Under the pieces are notes generated by a model that saw only the letters and a list, made by a program, of their open reading frames with translations, ran no database searches and was not told the origin of the DNA. This document shows, one piece after another, positions 4,801 through 17,130 of a stretch of 64,000 nucleotides of DNA. Position numbers and translations under genes: made by a program. The DNA comes from Klebsormidium nitens (taxonomy: Eukaryota; Plantae; Klebsormidiophyceae), in NCBI GenBank assembly GCA_000708835.1, contig DF236985.1:186001-250000 (forward strand), given 5' to 3'. Each line of letters begins with the position of its first letter. The stretch's first letter is position 1.

Positions 4801-7522
4801 AAAATCGCGAGCCCCTGAACTCACATGCGAGGTGGTGAAGCGGATTCTCTCAATGCCCGGCACGTCGTGCACGTATCGCAGCAGGTCGGTGAAGGTCCAC
4901 CGCCGGCGCCCCGAGCCGTCCTCCGCGAGACCCGGCAAGTCTCGGCCGTACGCGTCGATGTTTTGGCCCAAGAGCGTCACCTCCTTGTACCTGCGCGTTC
5001 CACAATCTGTGGTCAGCCTCTGGAAAAATAAACCAGCGATATTGCCCCCCACTTTCACTCCTTCCACAAAATTTGGACCCTTGCGACTTGTCCTCTTTTG
5101 GTACAGCAGAGCTTCAATAATCCGCTCGGACGATGCTCGCAGCGAGCGTCTCTGTGAGACTGCAGTCGAAGACCAGCTTATCGCGTCACTTCGTCCGGTT
5201 GAGTCAGGGAGAACAACGCTGAACAAGCACTGCTTGATCCAAGTGATAGACTCGGTCGCACGTTCTCCCAGGCAATGGAGTTTCAAGACCGGTTTCCTCC
5301 AGCCCTGCTGTACGCAGAGGAGCACACTTTGACGACACCCAAACGAAAGCACCCATTAACCAAAAACCAGCCCCACTCAGGCTTCATCTGCATACCCTCA
5401 AGTTACGCAAGAGGGTCAGCTTCTGAACGTCAGAAAGAAAAGGTCGTAAAGCTGGCCTCACCCTGCCTCTCCAAGCGCCAGCATCTCGCGCCGGATGGCC
5501 TCGGGCTCGCGTGACTGCTCCTTGCCGCGCACCCCCGGCACTACACAATAGGTACAGCACTCGTTGCAGCCATAGATAACGTTCACCCACGCCGTCACCG
5601 CAGAGTCGCGCTTCGGCTTGGCAATGTCCTCGATGATGTGAATGGGCTCCGTCGCGCAAATCTGACTGCCCAGGTCGACCTGCAACACGAAGGTTTGCGC
5701 CTCAAAGTCGGCAGGAAAGCTGCCTCTTTCTGGTAGGCGTTATCATGCACTAAAATCCCCACGGATCTTGATTCCTTACAAGCAGATGGCAACAAGGTAC
5801 CCTTTGTATATATATGTTCCTGAAGATAACACTCAGTCCGCTAGTCACTTTCAGAAGTACCGAAAAATGCGAGAAAAACCACATGCTTTGAAACCGGAAT
5901 CTCCTTTCACAGTCCAACCGCAAACTATGCAAAAATAGAGGTCGTAACACCAGAGCACGGATCCCAATATTATAGAGACAAAATACTGCGCAGAGGCTTC
6001 TCTGGATTTTCGAACGAGACTTTTCCATGAACACGAAAATCGGGAGGAAGCCCCAGGTCTCAACAACTAAAAACAGCAGATACCACCAGTTGTGCCCTCA
6101 ATCACCCTACTGCAGAGGCTTGTTACTGCCACCCCACTGCTAAATTCTGAACGCAGGCGGGCGGGCGTGGGGGTGGCGGCGGGCTTGCCTGTTCTAGCAG
6201 CTCCTGAAGGCGGTTGGCGTGCTGCGGCCCCATGACGAGGTCCACTTGCGGAACGCGCCGCAGCAGCTGTTCGCCCTCCTGCTGCGCCACGCACCCAGCC
6301 ACAATGATGCGCATGCTCGGGTCCGTCTTCTTGCGCGGAGTCACGCGCCCGAGGTGGCTGTACACCTGAGGGAAAGAGGGTTCGAGTATTTGGGTGTAAG
6401 CGGAAGTCGTTTCCAGGTAGATGGGGGGCATTCATGGGTAAGCGGAAGTCATTTCCAGGCGGAGTGGGGGGCAGACAGCAGCATGATGGAGAACTGTGAG
6501 TGCCAGCGGAAGTCGGTTCAGGCGGAGTGGGGGGCAAAGAGCAGCATAATGGAGGACTGTGAGGGTCAGCAGAAGGGGTTGCTCGGCAGGAATGGGGTCG
6601 AGAAAGTGGCGCGATGGAAGATGGTGGACTGGGGGGACAAAGTCGAGAGCCGCGGGGCATAGCGGCAATGTGGGTGCAGATTGGGTGCAGGTGGTTGAAA
6701 TGCTGCAAGTGCGTGCACTTCCTCTGCGAGGCTGAGGGTCGAAAGCAAGGAGTGCTCCCCATCATTTCACAATTCTGCGACTTGGTGAGGGCAACAGTTC
6801 AGAATTGATAACGATGTGCCGCTGGCCCATACTACAGGTGATTGAGTACCACCTTGGCCATGCCAGCTTTCGAGGGCCTAGACCCCACGAACTTCAGTGT
6901 GGCACTTACACCACCTTCACAAACTCGACATCATGACATTGTGACCTAGAATTCTGACGTGCAGCTTCGACTTGCAGTAAGGGTTACATCGAAGACAATC
7001 TAGGGGCCTTGCGGCGCCCACCTTTTGCTCGGCCTTGTCGCGGATGCTACACGTGTTGTACACAATCACATTCGCCGTGTCCAGGTCATCCGTACTGCTG
7101 TAGCCCATGCCCTCGAGCACCCCCGCCATGCGCTCGCTGTCGGCCGAATTCATCTGACAGCCAAACGTGTGGATGAGATACTTTTTGTCGGCGGCCCCCT
7201 CCTGCACGGCAGGCCGCTGGAGCACGGTGCCCTCCTCCCCACAGAAACCGGAGCCGTCTTCCGCAGAGTTTGCAGGTGGGGCGTCAGCGAGAGTGGCCGC
7301 CGAACACCGCACGCTGTGGGTGCGCTCCGGTTTCGCCTCTCCCCCCCATTGATGGGGGAAACCGTCAGGCTGCCTCGTTCTCAGGCACTGGTTGCTCACA
7401 ATTGGGCGGAGAGGGGGCAGAAGAGACGAGACGACGGCAGTCCTGCGCGCGCCAACCGTCTTTTCCAGGCTGCCACTCCAGGCAGTCAGGCCCGGACCGC
7501 ACCGGGTGGCGGCACCTGCCAT
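1837..7522 (-). CDS. miaB: tRNA-2-methylthio-N6-dimethylallyladenosine synthase (radical SAM methylthiotransferase) with an N-terminal organellar-targeting-like extension
   Basis: Nine exons splice in frame: 7522-7022, 6365-6189, 5679-5462, 4990-4825, 4535-4431, 4147-4039, 3310-3145, 2657-2561, 2019-1837. Motifs: TFGCQMN, NTCSIR and AGCVAQ (auxiliary cluster Cys); [10 protein letters not shown] (CxxxCxxC); [10 protein letters not shown]; IPFQSGD; [10 protein letters not shown]; C-terminal TRAM (GRTDGNR...GKIVDVDI). Confidence 0.95.
6399..6575. repeat. Imperfect intronic minisatellite (units starting AGCGGAAGTC, periods about 42/64/63 bp) in miaB intron 1
   Basis: agcggaagtc..ttccagg..ggggggca recurs at about 6399, 6441 and 6505, with a partial copy at 6568. 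Confidence 0.7.
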
Positions 7523-8141
7523 TGCAAATGATCAGTGTTCGAGAGAGAGGTCTTGTCAGAATGCGGGCAAGAGAATGGAGGGGAGAACAAGGAAAGGGCA
7601 GGAACCACGACCTGGGATGACAGCCTCCCTGCAAATTCTGGTGAGTGACAAGCTGCTTTCAGAAAACCCTAATGCCGAGCCCGTAACGGTACCTATTAGA
7701 AGCAAAGAAGATGGTAATGGTCCAAGGATTGGGTACGTTACAGCAGACCCGTTAACGCCTTTTCTTGGCAACCACGTCGCCTTTCCTAATCACGTGACCC
7801 AACTTCTACGCGCGCGCTTTTAAACTCCTATTGCGAGAAACTCGTATATAACGTTTCTCAAGGGTTATATTGGGGAATTGTCGGTAATGCTGGCAGGTTC
7901 GCCGCAGGCCGGACATGTATAAAGTTATAAACCCGCTTTGTTACAACCACTTTGTCCATAACCAGATGTATTCGCACAGGATTTTACGGTCAAGCTGCGT
8001 GGCACTATAATCCCTGAATGTGAACACGCTCTGAAACATCTCTGTTTGCATGCGAAGGCGCGAGCGGGTCTCCCAGGGCCTGAGGGAGCTCCGGACATAT
8101 TCACACTTCTGCGGTCCATTGACACACAGTTTCAGCCACAG

Positions 8142-11100
8142 ATGAGAAATGGAGATGAGAGAAGAGATTCAGAAGCACAAAGCTCTTCACAGCCACCTTT
8201 GCTGCAGAAGGTTCTGTTGGCTGTAGAGTGGTGGACGGCTCAACAAGGAGGAAGCTCTGCTACAGGGGTTTCCTTCTCCCTTGAAGCCTGACGTTCAGTA
8301 GAATGTGAAGGGGGAGAGACAAATGTCAAACTTGTGGCACCGTTGCTAAAGAGTGACTCTTTGCATTCCCGACCACCTTGTTTGACCAATCTTTTGCTCT
8401 GTATTGAAAACCTGACAAACAACTTCACCTATTTGTAAACCAAGCTTGGGTTTCTAAGAGCTGTGGGCAGGTGGTCTGCGCTCGTTGCTTCCATGGACGC
8501 TGCGAGAGCTCAGCTCGATGAGGCCCTGTATTCTTCTGGTCTGCGCACTCAAGAGCAGATATGCAGACTGGTCGAGGAAAGCCGAGTCAGAAACGGGGCT
8601 TCAGCAGGTGCCCCTGGCACATCCGCTCAGGGTTCAACCAAGAAGGAGGCCTTTGCTCTTGACAAGAAAAGTGCAGAGGTTTGGGCTTTCCTGGAGGGTT
8701 TGCGAGGTGTGGCATGGAAGGAAGGGGCTGCTGATGTCAGCGGTGGTTCCGGGGCAAGCGAGTGGAAGGTTTGTCTTCAGGCCTTTTGTCGCAACCCTGT
8801 TGTGTTCCTTCTGAGACTGAGCAAAGGAGGTTACTGACCTACGTCAAGGTTGACTAGATAGAAGATTGGTGTTTTGCTGTGATTTGCCGTGGAGTGCATC
8901 TGGATAATGCTGCCATTTTGGAGCATGATATTGGAGGTCTTTTGCATTGACCACATTGTGTCTTGCGTTCTCGATTGAGATGACCAGTTGTGTTCATGTT
9001 CGACCACATCCAGATATTGGTGCGGATTGGCAGATGGTGGGGTTTTTGACGCCTCAGTCAGCATCATGCACATGGGGCTTTGATTAGCACTTCTTTGGCA
9101 GCTGCATTGCTTCGCTCGCTCTTTGCAAGCAGGTGTCAGAATAGACATGAAACAGTGTATCTTGGTTGCGTCGCTTGGGCGTCTTGACGTGAGATGATTG
9201 CACATTGTTGCAAGAGGCATAAGAAATGGAGGTCCCTCTTGCAAGAATAAAAGCAGTGCGCTCTCAGCATTGCCTTTCCTCATCATCGAGTTGAGCTTCT
9301 GCGTGTTTTAAATTCCTTGGATAAGCCTACGTAGTTGCTTAGGGTCATAGAGGCACCATTCTACGCTGATGCGGCCACTTAAGTTTATTCATTTGAAGTT
9401 AAAAAGCTATCGTAAAAGTCTGAAGAAAGAAGAACGTTAGAAGAAGAACGTTAACTGAGTATCTGTATCGTGTGACCAAGGAGGAGGTGGAAATATAAAA
9501 GTGTGGCCTAAATTGTGTTTTTAAATAAGCATAACTCGGCCCTATCCATTCCAGCATCCAGGAATTGGTAAGCAGTAGAGCAAATGTTAACATGACCTCA
9601 AAGCACTTCTTCATCAATTTGATTAGATTGGTACGTAGTAAGCACGCTGCACGCACAGTCCTCTGACTTGCTCTTTGTTAGAGCATTCCAGCCAGATCGA
9701 TCCCGAACTTGACTCCTTGAGCAGATACCTCTGAAACCAGTCTTGCTCACCTGAATGATGGCCCTGAATGATGGCCCTGAATGATGGCGCATGCTGTTGT
9801 TCTCAGGTGCACGAAAATGCTGGTGACTTCCATGTGACATACAGAGAAGCACCGGGGGACATGGCAGCGCACAATATCTGTGTTGAGGGCATGTTAAACG
9901 AGGCCACAAAGTCAGGTAAGGAAACCGGCTGTCCTACTCTACATCTGGCAAGAAGTACTTGGGGCAGATTTCTGAGACAGCCTCTACTCATCAGATGGAC
10001 CATTTTTTGCACAGTTGTTGCATGCACGTCTTGTATTTTCTCGGGAACCGGCGCTGTGAAATGCCTGCGGCATGATGCTCCAGTGGTTGCTATGCTTAGG
10101 ATGCGCCAAGAATCTACTATCTAGTGTAGTTCCTCTCTTCGACAACGCTCACAAAATGCCCTAGCTGGGTAAGCTTCATTCTGGAAGGACTGACCTCCAG
10201 AGGATTCCCAGGATTGGCAGTGCGCCAGATCGTCTGCGGTTGTAGTTCTTTTGACGCTTGCCAAAAGCTCGAGGCATGCGTCATTCTATTGAAGCGTTCA
10301 CCGCTATATTGACAGATTTTGGAAGCAGCTGGGTGGCTTCTCATGGTGATGCGGAGGGGCATCAGGTGCGTCTGCATTGTTCTGCCTATAACAAATTGCC
10401 AGATTGTTGAAGTGGAGGGGTGAAGGGAAGAGTGCAATTCACTTGGGATAGAAACCACGTCTGTCAGTAAGGATAAATAAGGTTGGTGAAAATCAAAATT
10501 GACTCCCCTTTTCTTCCCTCGATTATCCTGCTAATCATCGACACTCTGTGACAAGCTTGGTTGGGGGACTGAACCGCTCACTAGTAGGGCACTGGTTTCT
10601 GGGATCATGGTTGCATATCTATGTCCTCATCAGAATTGTTCAATGAATCCAAAAGAGGGCGTGTGGAGCGCATGCTGTTCTTTTCCAGAGAGAGCCCTCT
10701 TGATGTACCATCTCATCATACGTTTGTCTTCTTTCAAATGCATGAAGGTTGTAGACAAGAGCCGAGACTTTGCACGTTTGTTTAACGTGCTTTAGGACAG
10801 TGGGAACATGTTTTATGCCCTTGTCTTCATTGAACTTAACTGCTCGTTCTTTCTTCTCTTCAGTCGATTGTGCACACATTGAAGGCAGCACGGGCACAGA
10901 AACAGTCAGGGTGAGTTACAACTGTACAGGACAATATAGATCACACTCACAAGTAGGTAATGTAGGAAGGGGGGGCACTAAAAATGGCCTACACAGCAAA
11001 TTAGGTCAACCGACGCCATACCCAATTGTTGCTCTGGTTCGTTTGGCATGGAATTCTCAATTGCAGACACCGAATGGTTGAGCTCTTGCGCTTGGTTGAC

Positions 11101-14100
11101 AGACCTGGCAGAGATGCTCCTCACGTTCTCTGATGCATATATGCAGTCCCCTGTTAGAACCCCAAATCTCTGCCTTTTTCTCAGTCCCGTCTGGTTTCTG
11201 CCCCAGGTCGAACCGTCCGCACCCGTTCAACGCTGCAGAGGTCCTGGTGGAAGAGTTTCTCCTGGGGAATGACGCCACTCTTTTGCTCGTGGGGGCGGTG
11301 AGTCTCATGGTCTGCCGATTCAGAGTTTACATTTTGCTCTACAGTTACGTTGGAAAATCAGTCATTGTGGAGACTTCCCTTATGCGGGAGATGTTTGTCT
11401 GGCCCTTTAAAGGAAGGATGTGGGATACTTTTCCTTGGTGCCAAATAGCTGTTACTGTACGTGCTATTAGGTGACAGTGCTCTTTTGCACCGGTTATCTA
11501 GGTTAATGTGCTCTGCTACAACATTAGCGCCTGGCAAGACGCTCTTCAATGTCATGCGCAAGTCGCTGGAAGGCTTCTCTTGTCAACGTCATCTTTTGGC
11601 ATCTGCAGCCTTCTTCTAAGAACGGCTCTCATCCGCCATCAAATGACAAGCACCCGCTTGCAAAGAGGCCTTTTGGGTGCTTCCTCTTCAAGCGGACAAG
11701 TGCCTCTCAGTGCTACTTCCGTGCACTTGCGGATATCGCTCCGGCCCAAGGCGAGGAGGCGCGGGCTTTTGTCGCTGCGGTCGCACGCCAGTTGGCAGGA
11801 CTGGGGACAGCCGTCTTTGGAAAGGTGAGGCCGGTTTGGTACTTGAGTTCAAGTCAACTCTGTCCACAGAGGGCATGCGGAAGTTAGGCGTGACACAAAT
11901 TCCGCGTTGGCTGCACGACTTTGACCCAGACGATACCCGGGCATTTCCTACGCCATGTGGCCACGATTGAAGCGAATCAAAGTCCCTGGTTTGCCTTGAT
12001 CAGCAGCACATTGCAGTCTCCGATGTACAGCAGAGCGTGAGCTGCGATTCTTCGTCCGTCAAGAGGCAGACTGGCACCATGTCATCTTTGACATCCAGGC
12101 TCGAGTTCTCTCGTTTGTGTCAGGAGTGAGGCAGGACAAGCGTGTGTGCGGGGCATCTTGTCATCTCAGGGGGATTTTCTAGTGGTGACGTCGTTGTCTC
12201 CGATGGAATCCCTTGTCCGTTTCAGTGTGCGCGTTGTTTTGCTGCTCACTGGCATCTTCTCTGTTTCTCACCAGAACTGTCTTGTTTGACACACTGGCAT
12301 TCCCTTTGCGATCCTTTTTGCTTTGCATTACGAAGAGTTTACTTCTCTCTCAATTTACGCTCTTCGTACTTAGTGGATCTGCAGGTCATTATTTTTCCTC
12401 CTTGTGAATAGCACAGCGCACTGCGCTATTAGTGACGTCTCCTCTTTCTATCAGTGCACCATTCCTGACAGGCGCCGTCTCTTTGGGCGCAGATCTCCGC
12501 TCGGGACTTCCGGGACCCGTCCGAGACGGCCATCCGCGTCACCCTCAAGAAGGGCGACGCCGAGCTGGGGTCGGTGGTAATCACCGCCTTTGAGAAAATC
12601 AAGCACGACCTGGGCGAGCGACTTCGCAAGCCTGGGGTGGTTGACCGGGACGCTCTTAGCGCATGGCTCAAGGCCGCCAAGATGGACGTGGCCGGGGAGC
12701 CCAAAGTGGAGTTCCGGCCGGTGGAGGGGTGCAGCTCCGAGGAGCTGTCGAAGGTGAGCCACTGTTCGTAGCATGCCTCGTTTCTGATATTACTATATAA
12801 GCCAGGCGGATCCTGCTGCTTGCCATAAGTTTGCTGTGTCTTTAGAACGTAGCAGGACTGCGTTTATTAGTGGGCTGTGCCGCTTTGATGACGATTGCGC
12901 TCAGGACGGTCCCCTGATGCTCGCCGAACGGTGTCGAGATGCATCGGACCCCTCGCTACGTCTTACCCATGGATTCTTTTATCTCCGATGTTGTGACTCT
13001 CAAGGAAGTCGCCGTGAAACATCAGTGAGCGCCATCTGGGGACCTGAAAGCGTGCAACAACGTTCAAGCTACAATTTGACCGCATTACAGGCACTCCTCG
13101 AGTTGGAGAGCTGTGGTTCCAACCTTGACAACGTCACAACGCCCGGTGGTGTCCATCTCGAAGTCAGTATCGGGGAAGTGAAGCAGTCAGGGGGCGGCCA
13201 ATTCCATACCGACACGTCATCTCCTCCTCTTGCGGTTGGGGACGACTCGGAGTCCGAAGCCGAGTTTCTGGACTCAGCGGAGGAGCTCAAGCAGGAAGAG
13301 GACAGCGAAAGCGACGCATCCACTCGCGAGAGGGGTGTCCGAAACTCGGAGAGTGGCGGGTCTAGCAGGAGCAAGTCGCCTAGAAAGCTCGAGAGTCGGC
13401 CCGTGGACGCGCACGCGCCGTCTTCCAAGCCGGAGAGGAACGCTTCCAAGGACAAAGCGTCGGGAGGAGCGGCAATGGTGGGTCGCGCGGCGGTAACGGC
13501 GCGCGGGGGGAGTGCCTCGAAGAAGATGACCGGGCGGAAGAGGCCTGCGGAGGCGCTCGAGTCGGTCGAGGACGTTTTGGCGAAGCTCGCGAGCGCCGTG
13601 CGGGAGGTCGAGTCGGAGCCTTCCACGTCGCACGGGCACCCCCCCAAAACGGGGGCCGGGCCCGCGCACGGTTCCGACAAGAAGGAGAAGGAGCGGGACG
13701 TGGTCCTTGGCTTGGGCCCGGGCATCTCGCACCGGCAGGGGGGGGCGAAGGCTCCGTACCCCCCTAGAAAGGAAGACACGCCGACGGCGGGTTTCATAGA
13801 CATTGACGGGAGTCCTACCCGCGGCTCTGATTACCCAGCTGCAGGAGGTGTGCCTAGCATGGAGATTAACCCGCTGGAGAGGGGGGGGGACAGTGTGGCG
13901 AGCGCAGCGGATGAGGACTCGGACGGCCCGCCGTCAATGGTGGGGTCGGAGGAAGAAAGCGAGGACGAGCTCCCGCCTCCGCGGCAGGATTTTATGACCG
14001 TTACTGACCCGGACATCCTTCGGGCCAGGTGTGTTTAAGAAGACTGCCTTCAGAGTGTCGTCGCAGCTTTCGTGCAACCTTGCGTTGATGCTGTGTCTCG

Positions 14101-15990
14101 AGTTTAGCGTGATGAGCATTCCAAAGTCGATCAGTTTCAAAAGTCTCAACTATTTTTATCAGGTCCTTCCAGTCTTAAGGTATCCGGGACGGACTGTCAG
14201 CATAGGCCCCTAATTTACGTCCGATCTGGGATTAGCGGTTTTACGCCTGGTAAATTGTCTGCATCGATTTTCCAATGTGCACAGAAAACAAAAGTAGGGC
14301 ATCAACGCTCCAGCTTTCATTCTAGAAGCTGAGCCGTCCGAACTCGTTCAGGCTCTTTGGGCCGTGCTCTAAGCCGTCCGATCTTGCCAAGATATTCGAG
14401 CCATCCTCTGAGCCGTCCGTTTCCGCGCTCAGGATCCTGGAGCTGACCGCACGCGCGGAGCAGCTGGAGGCCAAGTCGCGGCAGAGCACCGAGTGGGCGC
14501 ACGAGAAGGTGATGCAGGCGGCGCGCAAGGGCCAGAACGACAGCAAGGAGCTGAAAGGGCTGCGAGCGGAGGTGGAGGCCGCCAAGCAGCGGCAGCGCGA
14601 CGGCGAGGACCGGGAGCGGGGGCTGACCAAGAAGCTGCGGGACAGCGAGGACATGGTCAAGTGAGTGGGGAGGAGGATCGTGGCGGGCAGCTTTTGCTGA
14701 GAAGTCTGCCTGGGCCGGTTGTTGCGGAAGTTGGATGGGGCGAGTTGTCAGCGACTGTTCTTTTGTAGCGACTGGAAGCACTTGATGGCCGCACGTTATG
14801 GGGGCTAAGCTTGCAGACTACGTTTCGTGACAGTTTGGAGGGGTACTGAATTGAGTCCTCCGGTGGACCGTGTCGCCCGTCATGTTCTCCTTTCTGACGA
14901 AACTCGTTCACGACTTAGTTCTAGCCGGTTCTCAACTGCACCAATCTGTTGGTTCGCTTGCAGCATCATCTATTGTGATCTTCTAAAGGATCGAATGCAT
15001 CTTGAGACGTGCTTGTTTTGAACGAAAGCTCTGTCTGTAGCCTTTTCACGAAGTTGGCAGCAGGAGGATGGCATGGATTGCCTCAAAACCAAACCGTTTC
15101 CAGCCAAAGGGTGGTGAACTCAGGTACTGTACTTCTGCCATAATCACGGGGCATCTTTTGCCAACTGCGTGCCTAACCCCCTGATTCGTCTTCGCAGGCG
15201 GACCCAGGACTACGCCAAGGGCCTGGAGAAGAAGCTCTTCATGCTGGAGAAGCACCTCAAGGAGGTGCGCTCCGAACTAGAGGCGAGCCTTCTCAAGGAG
15301 TCTGAGACGGCAGCCCGTGAGGCCAAGGCGCTGAAGGCGGAAAAAGTGCTCCAGAAAAAGACGGCCGCCTGGGAGAAGCAGCGCAAGGCGATGCAGGAGG
15401 AGATCAATGGCGAGCGCGCGCGCGCCAACGGGCTCGCGGCCGCGGCCGAGCGCGCCGAGGAGAGCGCGCGTCAGGCGAGCGTGCGCGCGCGGCAGGAGCG
15501 CGCGGCGCGCGAGGCGGGGGACCGTGCGGCCGCGGAGAAGCGCGCGCGCGAGCTCGCGGAGAAGGACCACAAGCGCAAGGACGCGGCCGCGAAGAAGGTG
15601 TCCGACACGGCGGCCGAGAAGTTCCGCGCCGAGATCGCGCGGCTCGAGCGGGAGGTCGCGCGCCTCAAGCTCGCGGAGCACGGGACGGTGTACGGGTTCG
15701 AGGCGCCGCCGCCCGTGTACGACGTGCTGACGTCACCTCCCCGGGAGGTGACGCTGCGGGAGGAGAACGCGCGGCTGCGGCGGGAGGTGGCGGGGCTGGC
15801 GGGCGCGAGCGTGCGGCGGGAGCGCGAGTGCGTGATGTGCATGAGCGAGGAGCAGAGCGTGGTGTTCCTGCCGTGTGCGCACCAGGTCCTCTGCGAGGAG
15901 TGCAACGAGGAGCACGAGAAGAAGGGGCACAAGGACTGCCCGTCGTGCAGGACGGCGATCGTGCAGAGGATCAAGGTCTATGGGAAGTGA
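8142..15990 (+). CDS. Multi-exon gene: START/SRPBCC-like domain + acidic low-complexity linker + RF298/RF4/MIP1-type coiled coil + C-terminal RING (putative E3 ligase); 5' start and exon(s) between 9916 and 11206 unresolved
   Basis: Exons 8471-8768 (WSALVASMDAARAQL...SEWK), 9807-9915 (VHENAGDFHVTYREAPGD...VEGML), 11207-11297 (PHPFNAAEVLVEEF), 11609-11824 (GCFLFKRTSASQCYFRALADI...ARQLAG), 12472-12753, 13091-14028, 14433-14660 (ILELTARAEQLE...STEWAHEKVMQAARK) and 15198-15990 (RERECVMCMSEEQSVVFLPCAHQVLCEECNEEHEKKGHKDCPSCR). Splice phases are compatible with GT-AG at every junction from 11207 to the stop. The ATG at 8142 is tentative. Confidence 0.72.
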
Positions 15991-17130
15991 GGTCCTCCGT
16001 GGGTGACATGATGGGCCACGGTAGACTGCTGCGTGTTGAAATTCTTGCATAGTGTCTAGAAAGTCTGTAGACATTGTTTGAGCGATTCATTGGCACCTCC
16101 ATGCATCGTAGAGTCAAAAGTACCAGCACATTCTTGCAGGCATTTATATGTACATGCGGTGTCGAATCAAGCCAATCACCCCTCAACGACAAATCCTTGT
16201 GACCTGCTCTGGCGAAGTTTTGAGGATCCTAGTTTCTTCCTCGTATGACAACGCACATTGACAGTTGACCAATCGGCAGAATGCGTTAGGGCGTTTGCAC
16301 TCGTGACAAAAGTGCTCTGCTAAATGCCTGTTTCAGGCGGGGCCTGCGGTACATGCACAGTATAAATGTGCAGGGCCGCGCCTCATGTTACATTGCTTTT
16401 CAACGCGCTGGCACCGATTGCACATGAACGGTAAGATGCTACATGGTGGCGGCTGCATTAATCTTCCGTCTCGCACGATATTACAGAATGTAGCCCATAT
16501 AGCGGCAAAGGCGCACATGACATACCAGATAAAGATCCATGCAATAGCTTTCGATGGAGCTTCACATTTTACGGAGCATGTAAACGTGAACACCGTGGCC
16601 TGCAATGGACTCACCGCATCCATCTTAATCATGCTCGCAGGGCGTTTAATTCCGATTTATTGGCCGAATAAAGAGTGTCAAGTTGAGCGGCAACTTAATT
16701 AGCGATTGGCGTTCTAGGCTAGCAATTGCGTCAGCTGAACTGCGATGGTTAGACATGGATAGTGTCGGTCGCTTGCAACGAGATCGATAAGGCTCAAGGT
16801 TATATAGCCGCCTGCTGCAAGATCCATCTACCGAGGCAGGCAGGTTGACAATGTCAATGACTTCCGGCCAGCAAAATGCGGCCGGGCAGTCTAAGGCTGT
16901 CTAGCTCTTTGTTGGCCGTGAATGTAAGGTTGACCTCCTATCTACCGCAGCAGATTGCTGCCTTGCGCTGTATTATTCGCCCAGGAATCATGGTGTCCTG
17001 GCGTGTTTATTGTACCACACGCGCACCAATGTCAAGGCGTCACCCACCTTGAGGAGCCGCCTATAAGTTCCGGCTGAGAAGCTATGTTGCTCTTAGAAAA
17101 AACAAAAAACCAACACAAATGGCTCGCCCT

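Follow-up and report, generated by a model that had tools for sequence, protein, structure and literature searches.

A ten-exon gene of Klebsormidium nitens that probably joins a START-like head to the coiled-coil and RING tail of a plant ubiquitin ligase family

The window analysed here is a stretch of 64,000 nucleotides of Klebsormidium nitens DNA (contig DF236985.1, positions 186,001 to 250,000 of the forward strand; all positions given below are those of the window). Positions 8493-15990 on its plus strand contain an intron-rich eukaryotic gene, which is recognizable by codon periodicity and by a GC content of 0.58-0.70 in the exons vs 0.44-0.52 in the introns. The final model comprises 10 exons with GT-AG borders throughout (3009 nt, 1002 codons) and has no internal stop codons. 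An earlier, sequence-only reading had described an apparent fusion of a START/SRPBCC ligand-binding domain to a RING ubiquitin ligase of the RF298/MIP1 type. The translated exons of that reading were the starting point for the model, and the exon borders were then fixed by comparison with two related genomic loci, L001 (a 29.6-kb Logan contig) and L003 (a 68-kb metagenome contig of the Joint Genome Institute, JGI); another related locus, L002, covers 1 kb. The joining of the exons was evaluated computationally for stops, phases, substitutions and the GC content of third codon positions (GC3), and searches of Pfam, the PDB and the protein library were run exon by exon. In the following list, dN/dS stands for the ratio of non-synonymous to synonymous substitution rates.

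8493-8768, plus strand: exon 1, the start codon and the first 92 codons; helix-rich N-terminal part that ends in EWK; dN/dS 0.29 in the comparison with L001.
9807-9915, plus strand: exon 2, 109 nt, with the motif DF.V.YRE.P...H.ICVEG; amino acid identity 83% with L001 and 52% with L003.
10316-10365, plus strand: exon 3, a newly placed micro-exon of 50 nt (D.GSSWVASHGDAEGHQ) that forms a tblastx block with L001.
10864-10910, plus strand: exon 4, a newly placed micro-exon of 47 nt (SIVHTLKAARAQKQS), its frame conserved with L001.
11207-11297, plus strand: exon 5, 91 nt, with the PHPFNAAEVLVEEF motif; dN/dS 0.19 in the comparison with L001.
11609-11824, plus strand: exon 6, 72 codons, the last START-like exon, with G.F.FKR...SQCYFR..AD followed by a helix that contains RQLA.L.
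11825-12492, plus strand: intron of 668 nt that separates the START-like half from the conserved one.
12493-12753, plus strand: exon 7, 87 codons, the most constrained exon, which links the two halves.
13091-14028, plus strand: exon 8, about 312 codons, by composition an acidic linker rich in Ser, Gly and Pro that is probably disordered.
14433-14660, plus strand: exon 9, where the coiled coil begins; motif TEWAHEKVMQAARK.
15198-15990, plus strand: exon 10, coiled coil, C-terminal C3HC4 RING and stop codon (15988-15990); dN/dS 0.04 in the comparison with L001.
15991-16190, plus strand: 3' untranslated stretch, conserved with L001.

The opening MD.A.AQLDEAL of exon 1 and its ATG are kept in L001 and L003, this ATG is the only start codon that is conserved across all three species, and the donor of exon 1 is GT in each of them. 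The end of exon 2 falls one base into a codon, again in all three species. The stretch that follows (9916-11206), in which the sequence-only reading had placed no exon, is filled by the two micro-exons, both conserved in length and phase in L001 and L003: exon 3 has the identical length of 50 nt with AG/GT borders in both loci, and exon 4 has a 47-nt counterpart with AG/GT borders in both and brings back the phase that is required by exon 5. An alternative frame for the micro-exon at 10864 (VDCAHIEG...) is less conserved than the one adopted and breaks the phase; a direct join of exon 2 to position 11185 is in phase but is superseded by the conserved micro-exons. In intron 1, a short tandem repeat with a unit of about 11 nt, present three times and imperfect in its last copy (TGAATGATGGC...), occupies positions 9757-9790, just before the acceptor of exon 2.

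Downstream of this stretch, the exon chain of the sequence-only reading largely stands. The START-like strings that it quoted are found where it placed them (PHPFNAAEV in 11207-11297, and CYFRALADI...ARQLAG in 11609-11824), and, in agreement with the acidic linker, coiled coil and RING that it had noted, the exon at 13091-14028 is acidic and rich in Ser and precedes a coiled coil and a C3HC4 RING that is complete; the joined exons are read in a single frame from 11207 through the stop codon at 15990. Several borders had to be moved, most of them by one or two bases; for instance, the donor of exon 9 is 14660|14661 rather than 14661|14662, and the last exon begins at 15198. The acceptor of exon 7 is the larger change. 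The acceptor shared by the three species is 12492|12493, and the AG that precedes the formerly proposed exon start, 12472, is missing in L001 and L003; both starts are in frame.

A HMMER pass with exon 6 over 1.84 billion representative proteins yields two genuine matches, short exon-sized open reading frames (ORFs) on L001 and L002, which come from close algal relatives. Three other hits (P0001, P0004 and P0005) are spurious because they are repetitive proteins. Exon 6 of L001 is 76% identical to that of the window, and the conservation of this exon was judged on a four-sequence alignment. A word search with the ORF that contains exon 8 leads to the protein P0008 and, through it, to L003. This locus is more distant, with a synonymous rate (dS) above 1 in most exons and amino acid identities of 45-84% per exon. 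None of the ten exons is missing from L001 or L003; exon order and intron phases agree with those of the window, all borders are GT-AG, and the open frames span 995 and 1045 codons, respectively. Every difference in exon length among the window, L001 and L003 is a multiple of three, and the same applies to the insertions and deletions in the linker encoded by exon 8, which is 91% identical to its counterpart in L001 and 62% identical to that in L003. Exons 1-6 encode residues 1-263, a globular N-terminal region whose evolution is fairly rapid but under selection; the dN/dS values of 0.19-0.35 identify exons 1-6 as genuine coding exons. These genomic alignments indicate that at least three related algae share the gene in conserved form. 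A word-index search with exon 7 detects nothing beyond the L001 exon, and scans of JGI metagenome contigs with profiles of exons 7 and 9 confirmed no relative.

The case for one gene turns on the junction between exons 6 and 7. Compared with L001, exon 7 shows 99% amino acid identity, with 18 synonymous substitutions and a single non-synonymous one (dN/dS 0.01); compared with L003, the identity is 72% and dN/dS is 0.12. In all three species, an in-frame stop codon is located 8-9 codons upstream of the exon 7 acceptor, with no ATG between this stop and the conserved part. The sole Met codon of exon 7 in the window (12682) is replaced by Leu in L003, in which exon 7 is devoid of Met. Given that exon 7 is coding throughout, is preceded by an in-frame stop and has no usable Met, the frame that encodes the RING must start in an upstream exon. 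The candidates tried as start codons of a RING-only protein were rejected, ATG 12682 on account of the Leu in L003 and ATG 12917, located in the next intron, on account of its surroundings, which are not conserved.

A complementary argument comes from exon 6. Its donor site is AAG|GTGAGG in the window and in L001, GAG|GTGAGG in L002 and GAG|GTGATG in L003, and reading through into the intron would add tails of 20, 10 and 72 residues that are unrelated among three species. The combination of a conserved donor with unrelated read-through tails implies that exon 6 must be joined to a downstream exon. The gap between exons 6 and 7 measures 668 nt in the window and 579 and 955 nt in the other two species, which is within the length range of the other introns of the gene, and no conserved block is detected in it among the three species (blastn with word size 7 and tblastx; all E values above 0.04). 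Mini-exons that run from an ATG to a GT in the proper phase can be drawn in 11875-12283; they are weak and of the kind that arises by chance, and all of them lack both a good donor and conservation. The gene context points in the same direction. The upstream neighbor is a UPF0004/MiaB-like gene in the window and in L001 and a DSPc phosphatase-like ORF in L003, the downstream gene being common to all, and the persistence of exons 1-6 together with exons 7-10 despite the changed upstream neighbor is counted in favor of a single gene. Thus, exon 7 needs an upstream exon, exon 6 needs a downstream one and nothing conserved lies between them, so that one ten-exon gene of about 1002 residues, expressed as one transcription unit, appears to be the most economical reading and a probable one. 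The earlier claim of one continuous gene is accordingly what the comparison of the three genomes best supports.

Two features of this intron deserve mention. Some 60-140 nt before the exon 7 acceptor, positions 12350-12438 form an island of weak conservation that is 66% identical to L001 and is not seen in L003; a role as branch-point region or regulatory site is conceivable. In L003, the intron that precedes the real exon 7 (9161-9421) contains, shortly before this exon, a partial and degenerate duplicate of its 5' part (8999-9091), which is absent in the window and in L001.

The RING finger of exon 10 is the sole domain found when the exons are scanned individually against Pfam (zf-C3HC4_3, 1e-13). 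This C3HC4 RING is complete, all eight zinc ligands being readable, and it occupies the extreme C-terminus. A word search with exon 10 leads to land-plant proteins, some of which are named putative E3 ubiquitin-protein ligase or RING/U-box protein, and a cluster look-up provides full-length members, namely P0080 (Sesamum, 771 aa), P0081 (691 aa) and P0088 (Euphorbia, 943 aa). Exon 9, with the motif EW..QKVMQAA, aligns colinearly with the land-plant proteins P0080, P0081, P0088, P0021 and P0037 at 32-45% identity; the alignments of this exon to six land-plant or plant-like proteins have E values between 1e-7 and 5e-10 on the 8-kb target. Exon 10 is 34-40% identical to the land-plant members over about 250 residues that cover the coiled coil and the RING, the RING signature being aligned to P0013, P0021, P0037, P0080, P0081 and P0088. 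Altogether, the C-terminal 340 residues show the same order of elements as the RF298/RF4/MIP1 ligases, that is, I.(K/E)L...EW..QKVMQAA, a long coiled coil, and the terminal RERECVMC..EE.SVVFLPCAHQV.C...CP.CR, and a long low-complexity middle region is present in both.

The assignment to the RF298/RF4/MIP1 family made by the sequence-only reading therefore holds for the coiled-coil and RING tail, which is colinear with the land-plant proteins, but does not extend to the N-terminal part. At the N-terminus, P0080 and P0088 contain a PIR2-like helical domain (PF20235, 2e-28 and 1e-31, respectively), which has no Pfam match among the exons of the window or in exons 7 and 8 of L003 and is not recovered by tblastn with the domain in the window, L001 or L003. 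In the alga, this domain is replaced by the START-like exons and exon 7, which have no counterpart in the land-plant RF298/RF4/MIP1 proteins. Because the tail is shared but the PIR2-like domain is absent, the algal protein is not filed as a full member of the RF298/MIP1 family; the gene with the START-like head would instead be a variant of this known ligase family.

The best matches of the RING among the PDB sequences are cIAP, XIAP, MEX3C and MUL1 (E values from 1e-7 to 3e-5). Like these IAP-type ligases (cIAP1/2, XIAP, MEX3C, MUL1), the algal protein carries the RING at its extreme C-terminus with a short tail; however, only the 50-residue RING is in common, and the algal protein lacks the BIR, KH and membrane parts. 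The nearest tails outside the algal group are found in moss-like metagenome loci (L004:8825-10561 and L006:540-2450), and no START-like or exon 7-like sequence is present upstream of the tail in either. The position of the intron within the coiled coil in these two loci is unlike the split between the algal exons 9 and 10.

The order of motifs in the N-terminal region recalls that of START domains, which is a lead rather than a test: W-K, a strand with V.YRE, H.ICVEG, a stretch that includes a Trp, P.PF..AE.LVEEF, G.F.FKR and, at the end, a long helix. From this motif resemblance and the size of about 200 residues, the head is hypothesized to be a START-type ligand pocket. An AlphaFold2 (AF2) model of the exon 6 fragment has a predicted local distance difference test (pLDDT) score of 57 overall, and only the C-terminal helix, residues 49-70, reaches about 80. 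For exon 7, no relative is detected in Pfam or the PDB, and the AF2 model, of low confidence (pLDDT 52), consists of two strands, two helices and one strand; this exon may pack on the head or act as a binding site. The most far-reaching proposal is that a genuine START pocket, though a highly diverged one, makes up the N-terminal ~200 residues, that the protein is a ligand-gated dimeric RING ligase which couples lipid or small-molecule sensing to ubiquitination, that this architecture is shared by distant members of the lineage, and that it arose by a head swap in an RF298/MIP1 protein. As a whole, this proposal is tentative and we consider it rather doubtful.

Several observations weigh against the single gene and its START-like head. 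Neither Pfam nor the PDB sequences yield a START/SRPBCC match at E values up to 10, whether the search is started with single exons or with exon profiles from three to four species, and nothing significant is found in the PDB outside the RING; the searched exons are 16-92 residues long, which is too short for a decisive search for START. The continuity of the two halves faces difficulties of its own. GC3 steps up between exons 1-6 and exons 7-10 in all three species, from 0.57 to 0.85 in the window, from 0.60 to 0.85 in L001 and from 0.63 to 0.82 in L003 (Fisher p from 7e-10 to 2.5e-19), and the GC content of the introns stays flat along the gene despite this step. The dS values are lower in exon 9 (0.11) and exon 10 (0.24) than in exons 1-6 (0.32-0.76), and the amino acid identity with L001 rises at exon 7, from 76-83% upstream to 91-99% from this exon on. 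Finally, no transcript-derived protein across the junctions is found in the protein collections or the JGI metagenome contigs. The GC3 step and the lower dS downstream would fit two units or genes of different expression; an alternative source of the GC3 step could be an extra isoform in which exon 1 is joined to exon 7 in frame.

The alternative that survives best retains the single fusion and changes the head: the N-terminal 263 residues would be a lineage-specific domain of another fold, neither START nor SRPBCC, and the protein would have no role in lipid or small-molecule sensing. This possibility falls only somewhat short of an even chance. The missing START/SRPBCC match in Pfam and the PDB, exon-wise or by profile, speaks for it, and so does the feature search of the ESM Atlas, which returns nothing usable for exon 6; the corresponding search with exon 7 gives noise. 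The relatives of exon 6 in the full-library HMMER pass are limited to close algae as well, and the land-plant START-like family named by the sequence-only reading does not appear in that pass at E<=0.001. As far as this search shows, the head seems to be either restricted to this algal lineage or too diverged for detection. What speaks for START nevertheless is the order of motifs, which is a lead only, the span of about 200 residues that suits a START domain and the terminal helix in the model of the exon 6 fragment, in addition to the shortness of the exons, which makes the negative searches less than decisive.

Under another alternative, which we regard as unlikely, the locus gives rise to several products, that is, the full fusion together with a form in which exon 1 is joined to exon 7 and the START-like part is missing and/or a short form that ends in the intron between exons 6 and 7, the two halves being under different expression-linked codon selection. 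Skipping would preserve the frame, given that exons 1, 3, 5 and 6 all end in phase 0 and exon 7 starts in phase 0, and the steps in GC3 and dS would be explained with no need for a start codon in exon 7. Nonetheless, the additional products are purely inferred, and the dN/dS values of 0.19-0.35 indicate that exons 2-6 are retained as coding.

Two adjacent genes are the least plausible arrangement, and a distinctly improbable one: exons 1-6 (about 270-340 residues) would read into 11825-12492 and be polyadenylated there, and the RING gene would have a hidden first coding exon, short and poorly conserved, within the same interval and spliced to exon 7, a structure that would suit the sharp and conserved GC3 step, the lower dS of the 3' half, the step in identity with L001, the several mini-exons of the right phase and the weak island common to the window and L001 only, but that is contradicted by the lack of any conserved mini-exon or good donor, by a conserved exon 6 donor with read-through tails that differ in sequence and length, by the survival of the pairing through the change of upstream neighbor in L003, and by a gap of 579-955 nt that resembles the other introns, although a terminator, a promoter and an additional exon would have to fit into it.

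For the single ten-exon gene, a mechanism can be outlined in conditional terms. The RING would recruit a ubiquitin-charged E2 enzyme, the coiled coil would pair two chains, as in other C-terminal-RING ligases of this type, and the head together with exon 7, in place of the PIR2-like domain, would select the substrate or gate the activity; a START pocket as the head would be the precondition for any gating by a ligand. Multidomain proteins with START include the plant HD-ZIP III/IV proteins, PH-START proteins such as EDR2 and the animal STARD proteins, and we know of none among these that combines START with a RING. If the algal head is START, the common principle would be the coupling of an effector module to a pocket for hydrophobic ligands; the differences are that START membership of the algal head rests on motif resemblance and that its partner is a RING.

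The plant ligases of the RF298/RF4/MIP1 type are widespread and almost unstudied in the literature searched, where we found little on RF298/MIP1 and nothing on the present architecture. The algal gene suggests that the coiled-coil and RING tail of this family can work with a quite different head, one that is kept by selection across species in which synonymous sites are saturated (dS >1). As a START pocket, this head would make the protein a natural case of a ligand-binding domain wired directly to a ubiquitin ligase, relevant to the evolution of plant signalling and a precedent for design. If the head is not START, the gene would still represent a clean head swap that affected a family of ligases close to the origin of land plants, and it would also have the 87 residues of exon 7, almost invariant and with no match in Pfam or the PDB.

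Analysis of the surroundings of the gene adds several minor observations. The first exon of the UPF0004/MiaB-like methylthiotransferase gene is located at 6917-7522 on the minus strand, so that this gene is transcribed away from the ligase gene. Within the intervening region (7523-8492), positions 8245-8492 are 71% identical to L001, and this conservation suggests a putative divergent promoter. The GC3 of the neighboring genes is 0.72-0.78. At the other end of the gene, a blastn block at 15167-16190 is about 90% identical to L001 and extends 200 nt beyond the stop codon, far above the level of the introns; the conserved 3' untranslated stretch (15991-16190) may be a regulatory element.

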